From the sequence record NC_047995.1: DNA of 64,000 bases. The stretch is one strand, 5' to 3'. Below, piece by piece: positions 1 through 7,606 of the stretch (positions are counted from its first letter, which is position 1; each line of letters opens with the position of its first letter). Position numbers and translations under genes: made by a program. The notes below the pieces were generated by a model. It was not told where the DNA came from and ran no database searches. It was given only the letters and a program-made list of their open reading frames with translations.

Positions 1-636
1 TCGCATAGGCACTTCGTACCCATCAAGTAAGCCATGTCGCTTATATGCGTTCAGGCGTAGCACAGGTGAACTGACCCGACCAAGTTCCATGATGTTCAGG
101 TCAATCTTGTCAGCGTATATGAAAGGCCGCTCCCGCTTACACAAGATGTAATCTATCTCATGCAAATTAAAGAGTGTGAAATTCATATAGCCAATAATGA
201 ACTCCGCAATCAGCCTGAACGATTCGAACATGTCAGGCCTAAATTGTTGTGTGAGAATCTGATCAACGTAGGGTCTGATCTCGGTACGCATCTCGTACCA
301 ACTCTCACAGAACAATGCAGGGAAGTCTTCAGGGTGATGGGCCATAAGGCCCAACACTTCTTTCTCTGTATCTGCGAAAGAGTATAGGATGTCGGTAACG
401 TCATCGGACGCCTCGACACCTCTACCCGTGGAAATGAAACGTCGCTCAATGTCTCGTAACCACGACTCTGATGCAGATAGGTATTGAAGCAGTGTTTCTC
501 TAGCGGCTGCCGAGAACTCATGCCTGTTTGAGTCAAGAACCTCACCAAGCATGAAGGCTTTCGCTTTGTAGAAATCACTATAGCGTTCGGCGGTGAATCG
601 TCGGAACCCTATGTTATTCCTCAAATAGCCCATCAT
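1..636 (-). CDS. Hypothetical protein, at least 212 aa, truncated by the left window edge and absent from the ORF track
   Basis: My translation gives MMGYLRNNIGFRRFTAERYSDFYKAKAF...YEVPMR with no stop to position 1; its ATG (636) overlaps the TGA of 633..1148 (ATGA coupling). Confidence 0.8.
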   Translation of the reverse strand, partial: MMGYLRNNIGFRRFTAERYSDFYKAKAFMLGEVLDSNRHEFSAAARETLLQYLSASESWLRDIERRFISTGRGVEASDDVTDILYSFADTEKEVLGLMAHHPEDFPALFCESWYEMRTEIRPYVDQILTQQFRPDMFESFRLIAEFIIGYMNFTLFNLHEIDYILCKRERPFIYADKIDLNIMELGRVSSPVLRLNAYKRHGLLDGYEVPMR

Positions 637-1148
637 CGCAATGCCCTCAGATCATTCAACTCCGTGTTGCCTTGAGCGTTAGGAGTTGTATATAGAGAAC
701 TGGAGATACTCTGCAACCGAAGCCCGAGCTTCTCAAGTTCTTGCTGGTTGCCGCCTAACTTATCAAGGACCTCGCGCATGAGATCGACAGACCCTTGATG
801 GTCACGGGATTGCTGAGAGATGATTCGTTCGAAACGCTGCATCGCGCGGAGAACAGAGTTCAATCCCTCTTTCATGTCCAAATTATCGACTGGCGCGGAA
901 TCAGAGATTGACTGAATCATCCTCATCATCTGCGTCAAGTCGGCCTGTAGCTCGTCGTTGTCTGGATTGCTAATGATGCCGCTCTCCAGCTCTGCGTTAC
1001 GTGCTTTAACTTGCTCCAGTTCTTCCAGCTGAGGCAGTAGTTTCCACCAAACGTAGGCACCGCCCACGATCAGTAAGACAACCGAACCGACAGTCGCGTA
1101 GTTGGACGCAAGCAACTTGTCTAAAATTTCCGCCCACATTATATTCAA
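633..1148 (-). CDS. Single-pass membrane protein with a coiled-coil C-terminus (171 aa)
   Basis: Hydrophobic segment ATVGSVVLLIVGGAYVWW followed by heptad-like LEELEQVKARNAELE; coupled to neighbours. Confidence 0.75.
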   Translation of the reverse strand: MNIMWAEILDKLLASNYATVGSVVLLIVGGAYVWWKLLPQLEELEQVKARNAELESGIISNPDNDELQADLTQMMRMIQSISDSAPVDNLDMKEGLNSVLRAMQRFERIISQQSRDHQGSVDLMREVLDKLGGNQQELEKLGLRLQSISSSLYTTPNAQGNTELNDLRALR

Positions 1149-1429
1149 CCCTTACAGGTGTTATCGTTGAGATCAACAATGACTCGTTGAGCACCTGGTT
1201 CGTTTACGTCAGTGGTTTTGTACGTGTGCGCCATCCGAGGCTTGAACTCTAAGCAGCTCTGTCCGTATCTTCCATCTACTACACAAATGGCAGACAAGCA
1301 ACTAACATCTTCCTTGAGAATTAAATTTTCAGGAGATTGGTTAACACTCCTAACGGCAGTGATCACAAAGCCCACCACAGCGATAGCAATGACAACCACA
1401 ATGGCAATCCTAATTCGCTTGGCTTGCAT
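1145..1429 (-). CDS. Small membrane-anchored protein with a Cys-containing extracytoplasmic domain (94 aa)
   Basis: Basic N-terminus KRIR, then IAIVVVIAIAVVGFVITAV, then 4 Cys; GAGG upstream. Confidence 0.75.
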   Translation of the reverse strand: MQAKRIRIAIVVVIAIAVVGFVITAVRSVNQSPENLILKEDVSCLSAICVVDGRYGQSCLEFKPRMAHTYKTTDVNEPGAQRVIVDLNDNTCKG

Positions 1430-1464
1430 TTCTGGTTCTACCTCATGGTCCTTTCATCTGACTG

Positions 1465-1472
1465 AAATTAGC
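1465..1472 (-). promoter_or_regulatory. Putative phage late-promoter octamer GCTAATTT
   Basis: In the intergenic gap, 36 nt upstream of the 1429 start; the same octamer recurs in other gaps. Confidence 0.6.
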
Positions 1473-1495
1473 GAACCACAAGCTATCGGAGGATT

Positions 1496-2524
1496 TTATT
1501 CCTCCAATACACCACTAATCTCCGCAAACATATTTTTGTACACTAAACTACCATCGAGCATGTCCAGCCTGGCTGCCTGTACATAGAGCTTGGGTGTCGT
1601 GCGCATGTTAGCCCACGTCTTCTCGTTCGGGTCAAGGCCGCCCAACATCGGGACGATGACCATGCTAAGGTTGTGGTTAGCACGAACGAAACCAATGTCC
1701 ATGTGTTTCCTGTTTATGGTTCTGATTAGCTTGTTGATTGCGTCCAAACCAACTGGCTTATTGAATTCCGTATCATTGACAGTGTTGACCAGACTAACGA
1801 GAACTCCCTTATCTAAACCGGAGATCTCAAACAGATCCGACTTGAGATCAGCCTGAGTTGTTGCCGAGAAGTACGACACGTCATGGCCAAGATCTTTCAA
1901 GCAGGAGCCGAGAGCGCGTGCCGACTCGATGTGCGCTATGTTGTCATCACGAATAATGTACATAGGTGCATCGGGCTGGTACGTGCGTTTCGTTACCATG
2001 TCGATAAGCTCGCAAGAAGGACGGCCGACAGTGGCCAGCCCTTTGTTTGCGATGAAGAACTTATCTTTGTACTGCGCGTATATGTTCGGAGGCATATACT
2101 TCATGTAGTCATCGTCCAGGCTAAGTATCATTCGAGGCTTAGTGATCTGGACGACGAGTTGCATGGTACGCAGTGAAGCCTTGTACTCTGTATCAGAGAG
2201 CACACGGCTTATTGGTAGGTACTGCACTACAACGAACCGCTCGTCAATCGAATCGACTACAGAGCGAATCAACGTACTACCCAACGTAGGACCTGCCGAG
2301 AACTGAGTAACGATCATCACGCCGTCTTGCACGAGACTTTTCGTTGAGGCTACTGTTGCACCTCTTCCCCACTGTTGTGTAGAGGATTCCCAAGTTATGG
2401 CTGGTCGTTCGTCTCCGCTATCGGCATATACATGAGCTGTGCTACCCCAGAGACAGGCTCCAAGAAGGTAAGCAAGAGCACGTTTTCTGGATCGGCCTCG
2501 GCAGGATTGACCGTTTCGGGCCAT
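1496..2524 (-). CDS. Secreted protein with probable type I periplasmic-binding-protein fold (ABC substrate-binding/sensor-like, 342 aa)
   Basis: GAGGAG 7 nt before ATG; signal-peptide-like RKRALAYLLGACLWGSTAHVYA; alternating beta/alpha pattern with KPRMILSLDDDY resembling the KPD-x-I-x-x-x-DDNA motif. Confidence 0.55.
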   Translation of the reverse strand: MARNGQSCRGRSRKRALAYLLGACLWGSTAHVYADSGDERPAITWESSTQQWGRGATVASTKSLVQDGVMIVTQFSAGPTLGSTLIRSVVDSIDERFVVVQYLPISRVLSDTEYKASLRTMQLVVQITKPRMILSLDDDYMKYMPPNIYAQYKDKFFIANKGLATVGRPSCELIDMVTKRTYQPDAPMYIIRDDNIAHIESARALGSCLKDLGHDVSYFSATTQADLKSDLFEISGLDKGVLVSLVNTVNDTEFNKPVGLDAINKLIRTINRKHMDIGFVRANHNLSMVIVPMLGGLDPNEKTWANMRTTPKLYVQAARLDMLDGSLVYKNMFAEISGVLEE

Positions 2525-3222
2525 AGCACTTCTCCTCTCTCGTCAGTGACGTAAGGAATGCCTGCGCCTTTACCCAATCCATGACGTAAGGCCCACACTG
2601 TATCGGCATTCTCCTGCACGAACACTAACCCTTTGACTTGCGCTTCGTCTGTCGCAGTCTCTAACACCTCAACGCGCTTCTCAAGAAGCTCGGCATCAGA
2701 TTGCAGCACACGAATAGCAGACAGGTTAGAGTTAACACGCTGGTTCATGTTGTTGAACATGGTGAAGAACGAGTTGTTCATCGCCGTGCGAACGCCGTCC
2801 GTATAGGACTTAGGAATTAGTTCATCGTTGTCAAAGACGGTTACGCCTGTGCGAGCGAGAACTTTACCGGTAAGACGTCCACCACTTGCGCTAATGATTT
2901 GAGGAGCAGGTAAATCTGACTCGTCCCAAATCTGAACAGTGGTCATCACCGTATTGTAATCAGTCTCTTCCTGCCACGTATTCTTATACGGAGCAGAAGC
3001 TGCTTTCGACTTACGACGCATGACTTTCTTATAGCCAGCGTTTGCGCCATCAGCGATAATCCAGAGACCGTTTAGTGGAAATACGTGAGTAATCGGTTCA
3101 GCAAACGAAAGAATGATCGTAACGTCTGCGCCTACCTTGTACGCAATATCGTTCGACGCTGACAGACCTTGCTGTTGGGCAAGATTAATCAACGTGTCCA
3201 CGTAGTTAGTCAACTGGCTCAT
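2395..3222 (-). CDS. Putative virion/fibre-associated protein with a short coiled coil (275 aa)
   Basis: Long ORF with GGAG RBS, downstream of fibre genes; coiled coil LQSDAELLEKRVEVLE. Confidence 0.6.
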   Translation of the reverse strand: MSQLTNYVDTLINLAQQQGLSASNDIAYKVGADVTIILSFAEPITHVFPLNGLWIIADGANAGYKKVMRRKSKAASAPYKNTWQEETDYNTVMTTVQIWDESDLPAPQIISASGGRLTGKVLARTGVTVFDNDELIPKSYTDGVRTAMNNSFFTMFNNMNQRVNSNLSAIRVLQSDAELLEKRVEVLETATDEAQVKGLVFVQENADTVWALRHGLGKGAGIPYVTDERGEVLWPETVNPAEADPENVLLLTFLEPVSGVAQLMYMPIAETNDQP

Positions 3223-3682
3223 CCGAAACTCCTAACGATAATAAAAGTGAAGAACTTGTATCGGAGAAGGCCTTAGCGATATGAGAGGCGGCAGCCTTAT
3301 CGACAACGAGAGTGCTGATTCTGCCTTTGGTGTTACACACAATAGTCTGCGGAGCATACTGCGCGAGCGCCAGAGCGAATAGCAGATGATTGCCGAGATC
3401 ACCCGAGATAGATACCTCAACGTCCAATTCAGGAACGTAAATGTTCTGGTTGATTTCAGCAACGAACTGCGCCAGCGCAACGGGGTCGAACTCAGGAGGC
3501 GCTGTATCATAACCTTCAACAAGATCAATCTGACCTGTCTCAGGGTAGTAACGGAAAGCGGCAGGGTCTGAAAGGATTCTGCCAAACAGGTCATCGCTAA
3601 CTTCAATGCAAGACTCGTCCGTCTTCTCTCTAACACGACCAACGATGCTGTTGTTCGCTTGGTTAATACGAATGATAGGCAT
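3206..3682 (-). CDS. Hypothetical protein, possible fibre assembly chaperone (158 aa)
   Basis: Directly follows a collagen-like fibre gene; function inferred from position and size only. Confidence 0.45.
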   Translation of the reverse strand: MPIIRINQANNSIVGRVREKTDESCIEVSDDLFGRILSDPAAFRYYPETGQIDLVEGYDTAPPEFDPVALAQFVAEINQNIYVPELDVEVSISGDLGNHLLFALALAQYAPQTIVCNTKGRISTLVVDKAAASHIAKAFSDTSSSLLLSLGVSDEPVD

Positions 3683-3684
3683 CG

Positions 3685-4506
3685 TTAGTCTCCTACTGCC
3701 GTGTACCAGAAGTCCCAGCCGACAGTGTTAGTGCCGCTAGACTTAATGGTAAAGCCACCTAACAAGGCGTTCTCGTTCATCGCACTGGTGCCGTCCAAGT
3801 TATACAGCGTGAAAGTCTTGGACTGGTTCGTTGCTGCGTTCACAAACGTAATGTGAAGGCTGATACAACGGTTGATGAACGGGCTATTGAAGATAACGTG
3901 CAGCGTGTCAGTTGTCGATTTGTTCACGACTCGACCCATGTTGTGGGTGAAGCCTGTGTTCATATTTCGATTGCTACCAATCCACGCGTTCGCAATAGGT
4001 GCACCAGTTACTGGGTCGAGTGCTTGCGCTGTGCGATATTCATCAATCGCTGCGTCACGCCCTGGACTACCAGTAGGGCCAGTTGCTCCAGTAGGACCGA
4101 CTGAGCCTGTGTTACCTGTAGCACCTACAGGACCTGTGTTACCAGTAGGCCCATTACGACCACGGGGGCCGCGAGGACCGGGACAGCCATCAGTGCCGTC
4201 ACGACCATCGCGTCCGTTAGTACCAGAGAGACCGCGTAAGCCGTCTTTACCCTGTTTCCCTTCACGACCAGACTTGAGCTGATCAGCAGTAGGCAAACCA
4301 ATTACGTTTGACTGACTGCCGTCTGGCCAGATGATTGAAAGTGTACCTGTATTGGTATCGAACTGAGCACCCTGAGCACCTGGAATCTTCGCGGCTTCTT
4401 GCGGGTCAATGAACGCAACAGCCGTGGACGTCTTCTTACCCAGCACTTTACCTACAGGGTCTTTACCACCGTCGATAAGTGATGGGCTAATTCTTGTAAG
4501 AGACAT
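3685..4506 (-). CDS. Collagen-like fibre protein D (273 aa, 24 Gly-X-Y triplets)
   Basis: Uninterrupted GRE..GCP..GRD triplets, preceded by FDTNTGTL..GLPT; globular C-terminal domain. Confidence 0.85.
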   Translation of the reverse strand: MSLTRISPSLIDGGKDPVGKVLGKKTSTAVAFIDPQEAAKIPGAQGAQFDTNTGTLSIIWPDGSQSNVIGLPTADQLKSGREGKQGKDGLRGLSGTNGRDGRDGTDGCPGPRGPRGRNGPTGNTGPVGATGNTGSVGPTGATGPTGSPGRDAAIDEYRTAQALDPVTGAPIANAWIGSNRNMNTGFTHNMGRVVNKSTTDTLHVIFNSPFINRCISLHITFVNAATNQSKTFTLYNLDGTSAMNENALLGGFTIKSSGTNTVGWDFWYTAVGD

Positions 4507-4516
4507 GGGTGAACTC

Positions 4517-4720
4517 CTAACCAGTCAGTGTTGTCCAATCAGGTTGGCCCGATTGTCCGGCTTCGGGATTTTTGACTTTCGTGTTATTGATAGTCATACG
4601 AATCCAACGGACCGTTCCGTCCGTATCTTGCCACCGAACCTTCGTCCCACCGTATGCTAAATTAGCTACCCATCTGTCTCTGCTCGGGTCTTTGAATGCT
4701 AAACGTGCATATGCAGGCAT
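4517..4720 (-). CDS. Small virion protein resembling the N-terminus of 7648..9666 (67 aa)
   Basis: GGAG RBS, fills the gap exactly; RWIRMTINNTKVKNP resembles DWTPLTPEKFSVRNQ. Confidence 0.7.
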   Translation of the reverse strand: MPAYARLAFKDPSRDRWVANLAYGGTKVRWQDTDGTVRWIRMTINNTKVKNPEAGQSGQPDWTTLTG

Positions 4721-4729
4721 ACGCTCTCC

Positions 4730-7606
4730 TTATTCGATTTCACTCGGTTCCCAACATAGAATAGGACGGCGCCACACCTGGAACACACCGATAGGGTTCG
4801 AACGGAAGTCATCAATGTAAGCATCGAAAGTACGTCCGCCACTGTTGCCGCTAGCCATGAGTGTCTGCAAGTTAGACAGCCAAGAAGCACGTCCACCAGA
4901 GTCAGCTTCAAACAATCCTTCCCACACCATGTCGAATGCGCCGCGCCACGCGTTGAAGTGATGAGAAGAATATGCACCATCACCAACTGAACACAGCACC
5001 ATGTACTGGTAGTCTTTCACGCACGGAATCATGTAGTCATTCCCACGTGGGATAGCAGTGCCGTTATTGTTGAAGATACACTCCCAACCAGTACGGTCTG
5101 CGGCGCCTGTCGTCAAGAACAGGGGACGACGAATGATCATCATAATTCCGTTCGCCCAGCCGTCATTGCTTGACTTCTCGCAATACGCATTGCAGCGTAA
5201 CGCACGGTCAACGGTAAACGTGGTAGAGTTTGAGAAGTCACGGCTGTAGAAGTTCGAACCCCACTTAGGAAGATACTCTGCTGGTGGTACGAAGAAGTGA
5301 CGTTCAGCCAATTCAACTTCACCATAAGCATCATACGCAAACACGATGTACTCGAAGCCTGCTTCAATCTGAATGTTATGACCCTGTGAGCCATAGCCAC
5401 TCCACTTCCATACAACCTGCCAATCGTTTGTATCTCGCTCAGGCATTTCCGTGATGAGCTGATATGGGCGCTCGTACACATGCCACACTTTCCCTTCTTC
5501 TGTCGTGTTGATGTACAGAGAGTTAGGGTCATTGATGTTACCGTTAGACGTACCGCAGTAGACTTTGTGTGACGCACCAGCAGAGTTATAGATAGTCCCT
5601 GAGCCTATACCTGCGAACATATCCCAGTTCATCATCAGGTGCGATGTACACATTTCGTTCTGGCCTGCACCATCAGATGTTGAGAGCAGATACTCATTCA
5701 AGTCTTTGAACGCATAGCGAACGTAGTTACTGCCTGCACGGTTAACACGGTGAACCCAGTCGTGCGATTGAACTTTCGGCACAGGGAAGCATGGGTTAGT
5801 GACAGACACGACGAAGTTTTTAGTTTCATACATCGGCAGTTTCTTGAAGCGGTTATCACGAATCGTTACCGTGTGCTTCATGCCGTAGGTCTTACCGCCG
5901 TCCATACCGCCTAACACTTTGTAGTACGACTCATGCGCACTCTTGGTGTTGTCGAACAGTCCAGTGATGCCCATAGCAAGTGTGCCGTCACGATCTGTAC
6001 CTGTGCAGTAAGGCACGTTGCCTGAATCGAAGTCGAAGCCTACAGAGTAGTAGCTGTCAGGCGAACTTGATTTAGGGCCCCAGTAGAGTTCAGTGTAGGC
6101 AGAACCTTCACCGATACCTGGCTCACCGAATACGCAGTACGCAGCACGGTAGACATACTGGCTGCCCTGGAACACACGACGTGAAGCACCGATGCGATAC
6201 ATAGCAGCAGGCAGTCCGCCCTGCACACGGTTAACGTCCGCAGTATCATACGACACAACGAAGACGTAACAGTCGGTTCCAATCGAGTTGAGGAACGCAG
6301 CACATGCGGCAGCATTGGCAACACCTGGGTTAGTACCTTCGGCAGATGCGTGAATGTCAAACGCTCGGCGCTCAAGAAGTGCAAGATCAGACTTACGAAT
6401 CTTATAGACATTTAGGCCACGAGAGTCGTTGTACTGTACACCGTTATATATCGTGTAGCCGTGATCGCCTGTGTCAAGATAGCGCTGATAGCCAACGACA
6501 TGCGAGAACAGTCTGCTACGTGCCTGCAACGCTTGGCCATTCTGATTCGACCAACTGACAGACACATCACCAGCAGCAAGACGCGCTGCCCAGTCATCAG
6601 GCTTGTAGGGGAACGTGGTCACATCGAAGTTAACACCGTACGCCGAACCAGGTTCTACGCAGCATGGATTGCGATAAATAACAGGCGGGTCAACCACAAT
6701 ATCATCAGGGATATCGACCTGTCCGCAATACATCTGCTTCCATGTACCAGGCTGGCCACCTAGCGAAGAAGGTCCTGCAGGAGCTGCACCAGTGAACTGA
6801 TAGATAGCAGACAGACGATAGTTAATCTGGTTGTGCAGCTGAGGCACGTTCGTCCACGAAATGTGATTGCCGAACGAGTTAACGGCCTTAGCGCGAGCAG
6901 CAGAGGTAGAGACAACGTATGCCTGACCGTTACTGCGAATACCTAACGGGTTGAAGATGGCGTTGAAGTTCACGTTCCCTTCATACGCGTTCTTTTGAAT
7001 CACGATAAGACTGACGCCGTTGCGATGCGCTTCACGTAAAGCCGTGAGCATCTGCGTAGGCATACTTTGGTTCGTCGCAGACAGCAGCAGCATTACGCAA
7101 CTAAACTGTTTGAAGTAGCGGTAGTCACCATTGTAGCCGTATGCACCTGCGTTAATCTCCTGCCAGCTATGTGCGAACATGTCCAGAGGCATGCGCTGCA
7201 TATAACCGACAAGCTGTCCCCACGACTCCATCGCACTATCATCATTGACAGGAGCAAGGTCGGAGATGACAAGCATCGAACTGCCGTTCGTAATGTTTGC
7301 GTTATAGCCCCGCTGAGTCAGGAAGTGACGCAACGCACCCATGTTGTTAACGCTCTTATTGCGGAAGTTCCCTAACCAGCCATAGTTAGCATCGACGAGA
7401 GGGCTACCCTCACGAACGAAACGACCATTCATGTAGATAGCGCCAAAGCCACACACGTAAGCGAGAGAGTGGCCATCTACAACAAACGAGGTGAAGCGTG
7501 ACGCATCGACTGCCATAGCATCGACAGCAGACTCGGAACCATTGCCAGGGCTACCGCTGAACACAGGAGTAATGCCTCGTGCGTACAGGCAACTTTGTTG
7601 CAGCAT
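4730..7606 (-). CDS. Large multidomain fibre/adhesin protein with an ILEI/PANDER-like domain (958 aa)
   Basis: RGLNVYKI..FDIH..AAFLNSIG..VFVVSYD..RIGAS..YRAAYCVFGEPGIGEG follows the ILEI pattern; three C-terminal repeats. Confidence 0.7.
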   Translation of the reverse strand: MLQQSCLYARGITPVFSGSPGNGSESAVDAMAVDASRFTSFVVDGHSLAYVCGFGAIYMNGRFVREGSPLVDANYGWLGNFRNKSVNNMGALRHFLTQRGYNANITNGSSMLVISDLAPVNDDSAMESWGQLVGYMQRMPLDMFAHSWQEINAGAYGYNGDYRYFKQFSCVMLLLSATNQSMPTQMLTALREAHRNGVSLIVIQKNAYEGNVNFNAIFNPLGIRSNGQAYVVSTSAARAKAVNSFGNHISWTNVPQLHNQINYRLSAIYQFTGAAPAGPSSLGGQPGTWKQMYCGQVDIPDDIVVDPPVIYRNPCCVEPGSAYGVNFDVTTFPYKPDDWAARLAAGDVSVSWSNQNGQALQARSRLFSHVVGYQRYLDTGDHGYTIYNGVQYNDSRGLNVYKIRKSDLALLERRAFDIHASAEGTNPGVANAAACAAFLNSIGTDCYVFVVSYDTADVNRVQGGLPAAMYRIGASRRVFQGSQYVYRAAYCVFGEPGIGEGSAYTELYWGPKSSSPDSYYSVGFDFDSGNVPYCTGTDRDGTLAMGITGLFDNTKSAHESYYKVLGGMDGGKTYGMKHTVTIRDNRFKKLPMYETKNFVVSVTNPCFPVPKVQSHDWVHRVNRAGSNYVRYAFKDLNEYLLSTSDGAGQNEMCTSHLMMNWDMFAGIGSGTIYNSAGASHKVYCGTSNGNINDPNSLYINTTEEGKVWHVYERPYQLITEMPERDTNDWQVVWKWSGYGSQGHNIQIEAGFEYIVFAYDAYGEVELAERHFFVPPAEYLPKWGSNFYSRDFSNSTTFTVDRALRCNAYCEKSSNDGWANGIMMIIRRPLFLTTGAADRTGWECIFNNNGTAIPRGNDYMIPCVKDYQYMVLCSVGDGAYSSHHFNAWRGAFDMVWEGLFEADSGGRASWLSNLQTLMASGNSGGRTFDAYIDDFRSNPIGVFQVWRRPILCWEPSEIE

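Follow-up and report, generated by a model that had tools for sequence, protein, structure and literature searches.

The 64,000-nucleotide (nt) stretch of DNA analyzed here (the window) corresponds to bases 62001 to 126000 of the record of Erwinia phage vB_EamM_Alexandra (MH248138/NC_047995). On its minus strand, an open reading frame (ORF) of 342 codons begins inside the 3′ end of the tail-fiber-like gene gp104. On the evidence of conservation among related phages, this ORF is a real gene, and it starts at the ATG at position 2524, upstream of the start assigned to it in the databases under the names Alexandra_104 and HOT49_gp103 (here, gp103). We consider it probable that the product, read from this overprinted far start, is exported through the Sec pathway, has the fold of a periplasmic binding protein (PBP), is likely a lipoprotein, and belongs to an envelope module made late in infection. 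The protein belongs to a new family of putative exported proteins whose fold is already known, and both its genomic setting and the structure of its gene are unusual.

The gene starts within the 3′ end of gp104

The GenBank and RefSeq gene models give a protein of 278 amino acids (aa) beginning at GTG 2332. PHROG 31505 describes 273 aa from ATG 2317 and matches residues 70 to 342 alone (E value, 1.3e-129), and the alignments of 20 homologues found by word search all begin at M-I-V-T-Q-F-S-A-G-P. The N-terminal part of the gene has been dropped by GenBank, RefSeq, and PHROG because 130 nt of it overlap gp104 out of frame. We compared 22 non-identical lineages drawn from GenBank phages, IMG/VR contigs, and metagenome contigs; these cover the genera Alexandravirus, Sasquatchvirus (Y3), Snuvirus, Yoloswagvirus, Rivsvirus, and Salmondvirus (JA29), together with uncultured relatives. 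The frame was open from the conserved domain back into gp104 in all 22 lineages, and the far start was kept in every one of them, as ATG in 21 and, at the corresponding site in JA29, as GTG. The frame is closed by a stop codon only 6 to 54 nt farther upstream. The sequence AGGAG with a 7-nt spacer precedes the far start in 19 lineages, GAGG or GGAG does so in the remaining 3, and the equivalent of the proximal ATG 2317 lacks a comparable Shine-Dalgarno sequence in 16 of the 18 lineages that have that ATG. In Yoloswag, pEa_SNUABM_5, and the metagenomic lineage L028, Leu replaces Met at the domain start and there is no ATG, GTG, or TTG between the far start and the domain; the database models of these phages, for want of an alternative start, therefore lose 20 to 39 conserved domain residues. 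The orthologues in question (Yoloswag gp092, at 3085 to 3822 in L007/L022; pEa_SNUABM_5 gp099, at 3061 to 3822 in L008; and P0020, at 3001 to 3705 in L028) are modeled as beginning 20 to 39 codons inside the domain and should be restarted at the far upstream ATG.

The stretch between the gp104 stop codon and the domain was informative in a different way. This spacer has nine lengths (−4, 41, 56, 74, 77, 80, 83, 89, and 92 nt), all of them 2 mod 3, and its sequence cannot be aligned between genera. It was free of stop codons in the frame of the ORF in 12 of 12 lineages tested (shuffled versions, 0.19 to 0.55 each; product, 2e-7), and its other two frames usually contain stops. The segment between the overprinted signal and the domain is a degenerate linker.

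Formally, the database models could be right: translation would start at ATG 2317 or GTG 2332 to give a cytoplasmic protein of ~275 aa, and the extension would arise incidentally from conservation of the 3′ end of gp104, read in another frame. The conserved M-I-V-T-Q-F is indeed where PHROG 31505 and most gene callers begin, and a gp104 C terminus as conserved as this one would conserve the alternative frame too. However, when synonymous codons were resampled with the gp104 protein kept, the second frame was open in 0.7 to 9% of cases per lineage, compared with the 22 of 22 lineages observed. The spacer outside the overlap is in frame in every case and contains no stop, three phages have no start codon at the domain N terminus, the proximal ATG is without a Shine-Dalgarno sequence, and remote homologues (described below) carry canonical signals. 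We thus regard the database start as very unlikely. The first-pass annotation of this DNA, made from the letters alone, had proposed the 342-aa ORF with a signal-like N terminus ending in V-Y-A and had named a true start downstream of that segment as grounds for abandoning the proposal; such a start, which GenBank, RefSeq, and PHROG all assume, is rejected by the 22-lineage comparison.

The signal-coding region is overprinted on gp104

The overlap has the marks of an overprinted gene, namely, its own start codon and ribosome-binding site and a frame that is open beyond what the constraint on the gp104 protein accounts for. Synonymous differences in gp104 were lower within the overlap (0.345 versus 0.43; P = 0.027). 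That the signal-coding part of the gene is overprinted on gp104 was absent from the first-pass annotation.

A programmed −1 frameshift near the end of gp104 would be another way to read such an overlap, with the tail-fiber-like protein fused to the PBP domain to make a virion fiber with a PBP-like tip. Frameshift fusions are known in phage tail genes, the ORF is in the −1 frame with respect to gp104, and the two share a stretch that is both long and conserved. Against this, no conserved −1 slippery heptamer (X XXY YYZ) was found in the overlap, with a single chance match among the 22 lineages, and a frameshift fusion is therefore unlikely. Moreover, every lineage has a start codon and a Shine-Dalgarno sequence at the very beginning of the open frame, the translated overlap resembles a signal peptide, and in distant phages the two genes overlap by ATGA only and the downstream protein has its own signal. 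Taken together, these observations make a fusion protein extremely improbable.

Remote homologues bear on how the independently started, overprinted gene arose. A profile search of 1.8 billion cluster representatives returned 45 proteins, among which P0029, P0033, P0037, P0038, P0039, P0043, and P0048 are full length (300 to 337 aa), ~20% identical, and equipped with canonical N-terminal signal peptides; P0039 has the lipobox F-I-A-C. A tblastn search with P0029 gave an alignment that runs through the N-terminal extension of Y3 and pEa_SNUABM_5. We fetched the contigs of two of these homologues, P0029 and P0037, which come from uncultured jumbo phages. On them the overlap with the upstream gene is only 4 nt (ATGA). 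The P0037 contigs carry a full block consisting of a gp104-like gene, the binding-protein family, a ~90-aa protein, a PHROG 31730 membrane protein, and PHROG 19088, and the short P0029 contig carries part of the same block. Homology between the gp104 proteins covers nearly their whole length (Alexandra residues 1 to 264 against residues 1 to 255 of 257 in L031), and the ancestral arrangement without a long overlap is seen in L030 and L031. In the clade that includes Alexandra and JA29, the start thus appears to lie ~32 codons deeper in gp104 than it once did, and gp104 itself appears to have gained ~11 codons. The Alexandra/JA29 signal peptide would therefore be an overprinted novelty.

The N terminus resembles an export signal, possibly that of a lipoprotein

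The signal was assessed by heuristics (charge, Kyte-Doolittle hydropathy, and cleavage pattern) and by the canonical signals of the remote homologues. Residues 1 to 34 of the Alexandra protein have an n-region with a charge of +6, a core with a mean Kyte-Doolittle value of 1.67 (12 residues), and the ending V-Y-A|D, which bears out the signal-like N terminus described in the first-pass annotation. Across lineages the n-region charge is +4 to +6, the core mean is 1.7 to 2.2 over 12 residues, and V-[HY]-A|D occurs at residue 34 in most. A positive n-region, a hydrophobic core of 10 to 15 residues, and small residues at −3 and −1 are what a Sec-type signal cleaved by signal peptidase I would be expected to have. 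In the AlphaFold model, residues 14 to 27 form a helix and residues 28 to 62 are disordered (predicted local distance difference test [pLDDT] score, <50). These features suggest that the precursor is exported by Sec, and export as a family-wide trait is strongly supported by the canonical signal peptides of the remote homologues.

Whether the mature protein is also lipidated depends on how Cys24 is read. All 22 lineages have TGT as its codon, including those in which the overlapped gp104 codon specifies Ala or Ser in place of Pro; the third base of that gp104 codon is the first base of the Cys24 codon, and it never changes. The surrounding motif is L/F-G-[AS]-C in 21 of 22 lineages. Gly at −2 (in all lineages) and Phe at −3 (in some) fall outside the strict lipobox, [LVI][ASTVI][GAS]C, and fit only a relaxed pattern, and the core before Cys24 is only ~8 residues long. 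We lean somewhat toward a lipoprotein tethered to a membrane because Cys24 is invariant and is followed by a disordered stretch of ~45 residues, and the tether would probably be in the outer membrane, since residue +2 is Leu.

Cleavage by signal peptidase I after V-Y-A (residue 34) would instead yield a free periplasmic protein. The conservation of V-[HY]-A|D at this position in most lineages is consistent with such cleavage, as are the signals of the AxA type without a cysteine in several remote homologues and the non-canonical lipobox of lineage L025. However, keeping Cys24 constant costs a synonymous site, which stays fixed, a disordered segment of 35 to 45 residues makes sense as a tether, and CD0873, the closest structural neighbor, and the Bmp/PnrA/RfuA matches (see below) are lipoproteins. 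A free periplasmic protein is thus a serious but distinctly less likely outcome than a lipoprotein.

The mature domain has a class I substrate-binding protein fold

AlphaFold modeling from an alignment of the long forms and the remote homologues (alignment A2) gave a pLDDT of 77 and a two-lobe alpha/beta domain predicted with confidence from about residue 66 onward. Strands and helices alternate across residues 66 to 342 of this model, as the beta/alpha pattern noted in the first-pass annotation had implied. In a VIA-align comparison with 48,161 chains, for which the best 50 matches were listed, the best was 3lft_B (Z, 15.5; 238 of 288 to 290 residues aligned; root mean square deviation, 4.1), followed by 6hni_A (CD0873; Z, 14.9) and 5z6v (Z, 13.3). 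The matches listed also include about 45 others at Z values of 10.7 to 12.6, which are class I binding proteins and LacI-type sensor domains, and nearly all of the 50 were substrate-binding proteins, LacI-type sensor domains, or related repressors. Foldseek agreed with VIA-align and added 3lkv, and Bmp/PnrA/RfuA were also among the structural matches. The model shows two Rossmann-like alpha/beta/alpha lobes spanning the whole domain, the arrangement of the PBP-like I fold. CD0873, SP1069 (3LFT), and VC_1101 (3LKV) are class I (cluster B) aromatic amino-acid binding proteins; CD0873 has the class I substrate-binding protein fold and is a lipoprotein whose N-terminal tether is disordered (PMC6816091). 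Structural modeling thus strongly supports a class I substrate-binding protein fold for the domain. Several polar residues are nearly invariant family-wide in alignment A2 (D193, E253, N271, H274, D276, N285, and R319).

An earlier model (273 aa, shallow alignment, pLDDT 70) had given weak caspase and PBP matches, and the caspase matches, which were gone with the deeper alignment, were rejected. The ESM Atlas returned only sub-threshold, molybdopterin-type clusters (score, 0.89), which were not used. A viral structure library returned only the protein's own orthologues, followed by weak matches to giant-virus binding proteins.

At the level of sequence the picture was different. The first-pass annotation had pointed to PF04392 (ABC_sub_bind), the group to which 3lft, CD0873, and 3lkv presumably belong. 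PF04392 did not match the protein at an E value of ≤0.1 or any of 10 remote homologues, and a six-frame scan of the whole phage with it found nothing although control genomes were positive. Pfam as a whole gave no match to the protein or to the 10 remote homologues, the family profile had no meaningful match to Protein Data Bank (PDB) sequences, and searches of NCBIfam, PADLOC, and PDB sequences with the protein itself had none either. Given structural matches without a sequence-level match, the family is new in sequence and known in fold; of the first-pass interpretation, the PBP type I fold and the export signal stand, and membership in PF04392 does not.

Genomic setting and neighboring genes

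Positions 1 to 6000 of the window are 100% identical (megablast) to bases 62001 to 68000 of the record of Alexandra, a 266.5-kb jumbo myovirus of Erwinia. As the first-pass annotation had recognized, gp103 sits in a late block of virion genes and is followed by two genes, gp102 and gp101, whose products have hydrophobic N-terminal segments. It lies on the minus strand within a long late structural run that includes collagen-like tail fibers, an ILEI-domain protein, virion structural proteins, and baseplate, sheath, and head genes. The coordinates of the gene, its parts, and its neighbors are collected in Table 1.

Table 1. Features of gp103 and adjacent genes, in window coordinates
Feature	Positions	Strand	Basis
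Full gene Alexandra_104/HOT49_gp103, restarted at ATG 2524; 342 codons plus stop (predicted export signal, linker, PBP-type-I-fold domain)	1496..2524	−	ORF; 22-lineage conservation; AlphaFold
Shine-Dalgarno sequence AGGAG, 7 nt before ATG 2524	2532..2536	−	Sequence, lineage comparison
Out-of-frame dual-coding overlap with gp104 3′ end, 130 nt	2395..2524	−	ORFs; resampling; synonymous differences
Putative signal peptide coding region, residues 1 to 34	2423..2524	−	n-region, core, lipobox-like Cys24, V-Y-A then D
Lipobox-like L-G-A-C, Cys24 codon	2453-2455	−	TGT kept across lineages
Linker, residues 35 to 69; disordered, variable in sequence and length, always in frame	2318..2422	−	pLDDT, spacer comparison
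Conserved two-lobe alpha/beta domain, residues 70 to 342 (PHROG 31505)	1499..2317	−	PHROG match, alignments A1/A2, VIA-align
gp104, 275 aa, tail-fiber-like; last 43 codons shared with the signal peptide gene	2395..3222	−	ORF, PHROG
gp102, 94 aa, hydrophobic N-terminal segment plus ~65-aa four-cysteine domain	1145..1429	−	Alignment A3
gp101, 168 aa (RefSeq start), one hydrophobic segment then ~130-aa helical region; PHROG 31730	633..1139	−	
gp100, 247 aa, cut by window edge; PHROG 19088	1..636	−	

The N terminus of gp104 matches tail-protein PHROGs; its label "HNH endonuclease" (RefSeq, phrog_24148) looks wrong, as there is no corresponding Pfam domain. The gp102 protein has a basic N terminus and a strongly hydrophobic segment and is very highly conserved. 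Three cysteines in its C-terminal 65 residues are invariant and a fourth is present in at least 90% of the aligned sequences, and these cysteines are kept even in phages whose binding-protein domain is only ~20% identical. This conservation suggests a disulfide-bonded extracytoplasmic domain, and gp102 is probably an exported mini-domain of that kind. The stop of gp101 and the start of gp100 share 4 nt, an overlap through which the translation of the two genes may be coupled. The gp100 label "ABC transporter" (phrog_19088) also looks wrong, being without Pfam support and with no Walker motif evident; a conserved motif, C-S-L-x-x-C-[DE]-x-x-[FY]-F, closes the proteins of the gp100 family (e.g., L010:4681-5421). 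The block of five genes is kept in at least one uncultured phage that is only distantly related (L031), and part of it was seen in L030.

Searches of the neighbors with the Pfam ABC_tran and permease models gave no match, so that the cognate permease and ATPase genes that would mark an ATP-binding cassette (ABC) importer were not found there. Likewise, gp101 and gp102 had no holin, antiholin, or spanin match in Pfam, PHROG, or NCBIfam, families that would point to a lysis inhibition module of the T4 type, and none of the neighbors, gp100 and gp104 included, matched a holin, spanin, or defense family.

Two further observations concern the surrounding DNA. A 10-bp hairpin with a weak T-rich tail spans the stop codon of gp103 (1484 to 1509, minus strand), just before the 66 nt that separate the gene from gp102; it could act as an attenuator or on RNA stability. 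The total from a promoter and terminator scan was not above shuffle expectation. Elsewhere in the late run, a 958-aa protein (4730 to 7606, minus strand) has an ILEI (interleukin-like EMT inducer) Pfam domain at residues 396 to 497; the match is exactly at the gathering score (27 bits; E value, 6.5e-6), and the domain is kept across related jumbo phages.

Proposed mechanism and possible roles

In the mechanism that we propose, translation would begin at ATG 2524 within the 3′ end of gp104, in the −1 frame and from the gene's own AGGAG. The export signal (residues 1 to 34), created by overprinting gp104, would direct the precursor to Sec, and lipidation at Cys24 would leave a membrane-tethered protein for which the disordered linker serves as the tether. 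The cleft of the two-lobe domain (residues ~66 to 342) presumably binds a small molecule or a component of the host envelope. The gene would be transcribed with the late tail-fiber and virion genes and is co-inherited with gp102, gp101, and gp100; late in infection, gp103, gp102, and gp101 may work in the host periplasm as an envelope module of the phage. We infer that the protein binds a ligand and cooperates with gp102 and gp101.

As to what such a module might do, we can only guess. By analogy with the Llp and Cor genes, which lie beside receptor-binding genes, we rank masking of a receptor or of another part of the envelope first; masking could protect the infected cell from superinfection or stop progeny from sticking to debris. 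Control of lysis timing would come second, and nutrient scavenging through a host importer third.

A role in lysis timing or superinfection detection was the suggestion of the first-pass annotation, in which a periplasmic ligand sensor would signal through gp102 and gp101 in a manner analogous to T4 lysis inhibition. T4 RI and T offer an architecture for comparison: gp102 (small, with an N-terminal anchor and a periplasmic domain) and gp101 (single pass, with a large soluble domain) resemble them in outline, and the conservation of the five-gene block in at least one distant uncultured phage would fit a functional unit of this kind. However, neither neighbor has a match among the holin, antiholin, or spanin families, gp101 is of ambiguous topology, and a location in the late structural operon is not specific to lysis genes. 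We therefore think a sensor of this type unlikely.

Alternatively, gp103 could be an auxiliary metabolic gene whose product docks on a host ABC importer and boosts nutrient uptake, as in the case of cyanophage PstS, and the closest structures are indeed aromatic amino-acid binding proteins of ABC importers. This would be hard to reconcile with a gene that lies in the late virion and tail-fiber operon instead of among early or metabolic genes, that has no sequence similarity to any host binding protein family, and that is co-inherited with small phage membrane proteins and is not free-standing; we give a metabolic function little credence.

Several points count against our preferred reading of gp103 as an overprinted, exported, and probably lipidated protein of a late envelope module. 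The drop in synonymous variation in the overlap is modest, and the strong conservation of the gp104 C terminus confounds much of that seen in the signal. The signal was called by heuristics, and its core, which includes Gly, Ser, Thr, and His, reaches only moderate hydrophobicity. At lipobox position −1, lineage L025 has Ile, and several remote homologues resemble signal peptidase I substrates and not lipoproteins. The structures matched by the fold are only 7 to 12% identical, and the Pfam models of the PBP families gave no match to the protein. No transporter, kinase, or cyclase partner is encoded nearby. Finally, a literature search, whose coverage did not extend to the Y3 paper, found no virion or infected-cell proteomics or functional data on the protein or its orthologues.

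A more far-reaching scheme, which we put forward as speculation with a rather low chance of being right, is that the "hairy" jumbo phages deploy a late module acting in the periplasm, made up of an outer-membrane-tethered PBP-fold lipoprotein, an exported mini-protein with two disulfides, and a single-pass membrane protein. Such a module would sense or sequester a ligand or mask a receptor and would thereby control superinfection, lysis timing, or loss to debris, and its signal would have arisen de novo by overprinting, replacing a conventional ancestral one.

The corrected gene model applies to PHROG 31505 and to family members in at least 57 phage genomes, and it turns a "hypothetical protein" into a putative exported protein with a recognizable fold. 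Apart from cyanophage PstS, tailed phages are not known to encode periplasmic binding-protein folds. The position of gp103 between tail-fiber and virion genes and beside two predicted envelope proteins suggests an as yet unstudied activity in the host periplasm late in infection, in a group of phages relevant to fire-blight biocontrol. The gene also offers what appears to be a clean, datable case of a signal peptide created by overprinting, in which the ancestral non-overlapping state persists in distant relatives.

Comparison with known systems

The best structural matches, CD0873, SP1069, and VC_1101, share with the Alexandra protein two alpha/beta/alpha lobes and an N-terminal export signal. 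They differ in sequence (9 to 12% identity, with no match of the phage protein to the PF04392 hidden Markov model) and in context, since the phage gene lies in a tail-fiber block with no adjacent ABC permease or ATPase genes. The C-terminal domain of LpoA, an outer membrane lipoprotein that activates PBP1A, is a tethered PBP-like domain, as is predicted for the Alexandra protein, and it binds a protein partner and not a nutrient. Its structure, 5vbg, was among the Foldseek matches, albeit weakly (E value, 2.7e-4; TM score, 0.22), and the Alexandra protein, unlike LpoA, has no TPR domain; any link to peptidoglycan synthesis would be purely speculative.

Cyanophage PstS, a phage-encoded periplasmic phosphate-binding protein, provides a precedent for periplasmic substrate-binding proteins in phages. 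It is a class II protein, a clear homologue of host PstS, and an auxiliary metabolic gene product, whereas the Alexandra protein is predicted to be class I, has no cellular sequence relatives, and is encoded in a structural operon. The superinfection-exclusion lipoproteins Llp of T5 and Cor offer a parallel in gene order: each is an exported (lipo)protein encoded beside receptor-binding or tail-fiber genes, as is the predicted Alexandra lipoprotein. In contrast to the latter, they are small (~60 to 80 aa) and have unrelated folds, and no homology to the Alexandra protein was detected.

With respect to gene structure, the parallel is Rz/Rz1 of phage lambda, in which a lipoprotein gene is embedded out of frame in another gene. 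In both systems, a phage export or lipoprotein signal is encoded in the second frame of a neighbor, where routine annotation misses it. The two differ in that the Alexandra overlap comprises the predicted signal peptide only (43 codons) and has a tail-fiber-like partner, and in that the mature Alexandra protein would be a binding-protein fold of 270 aa instead of a 40-aa spanin.

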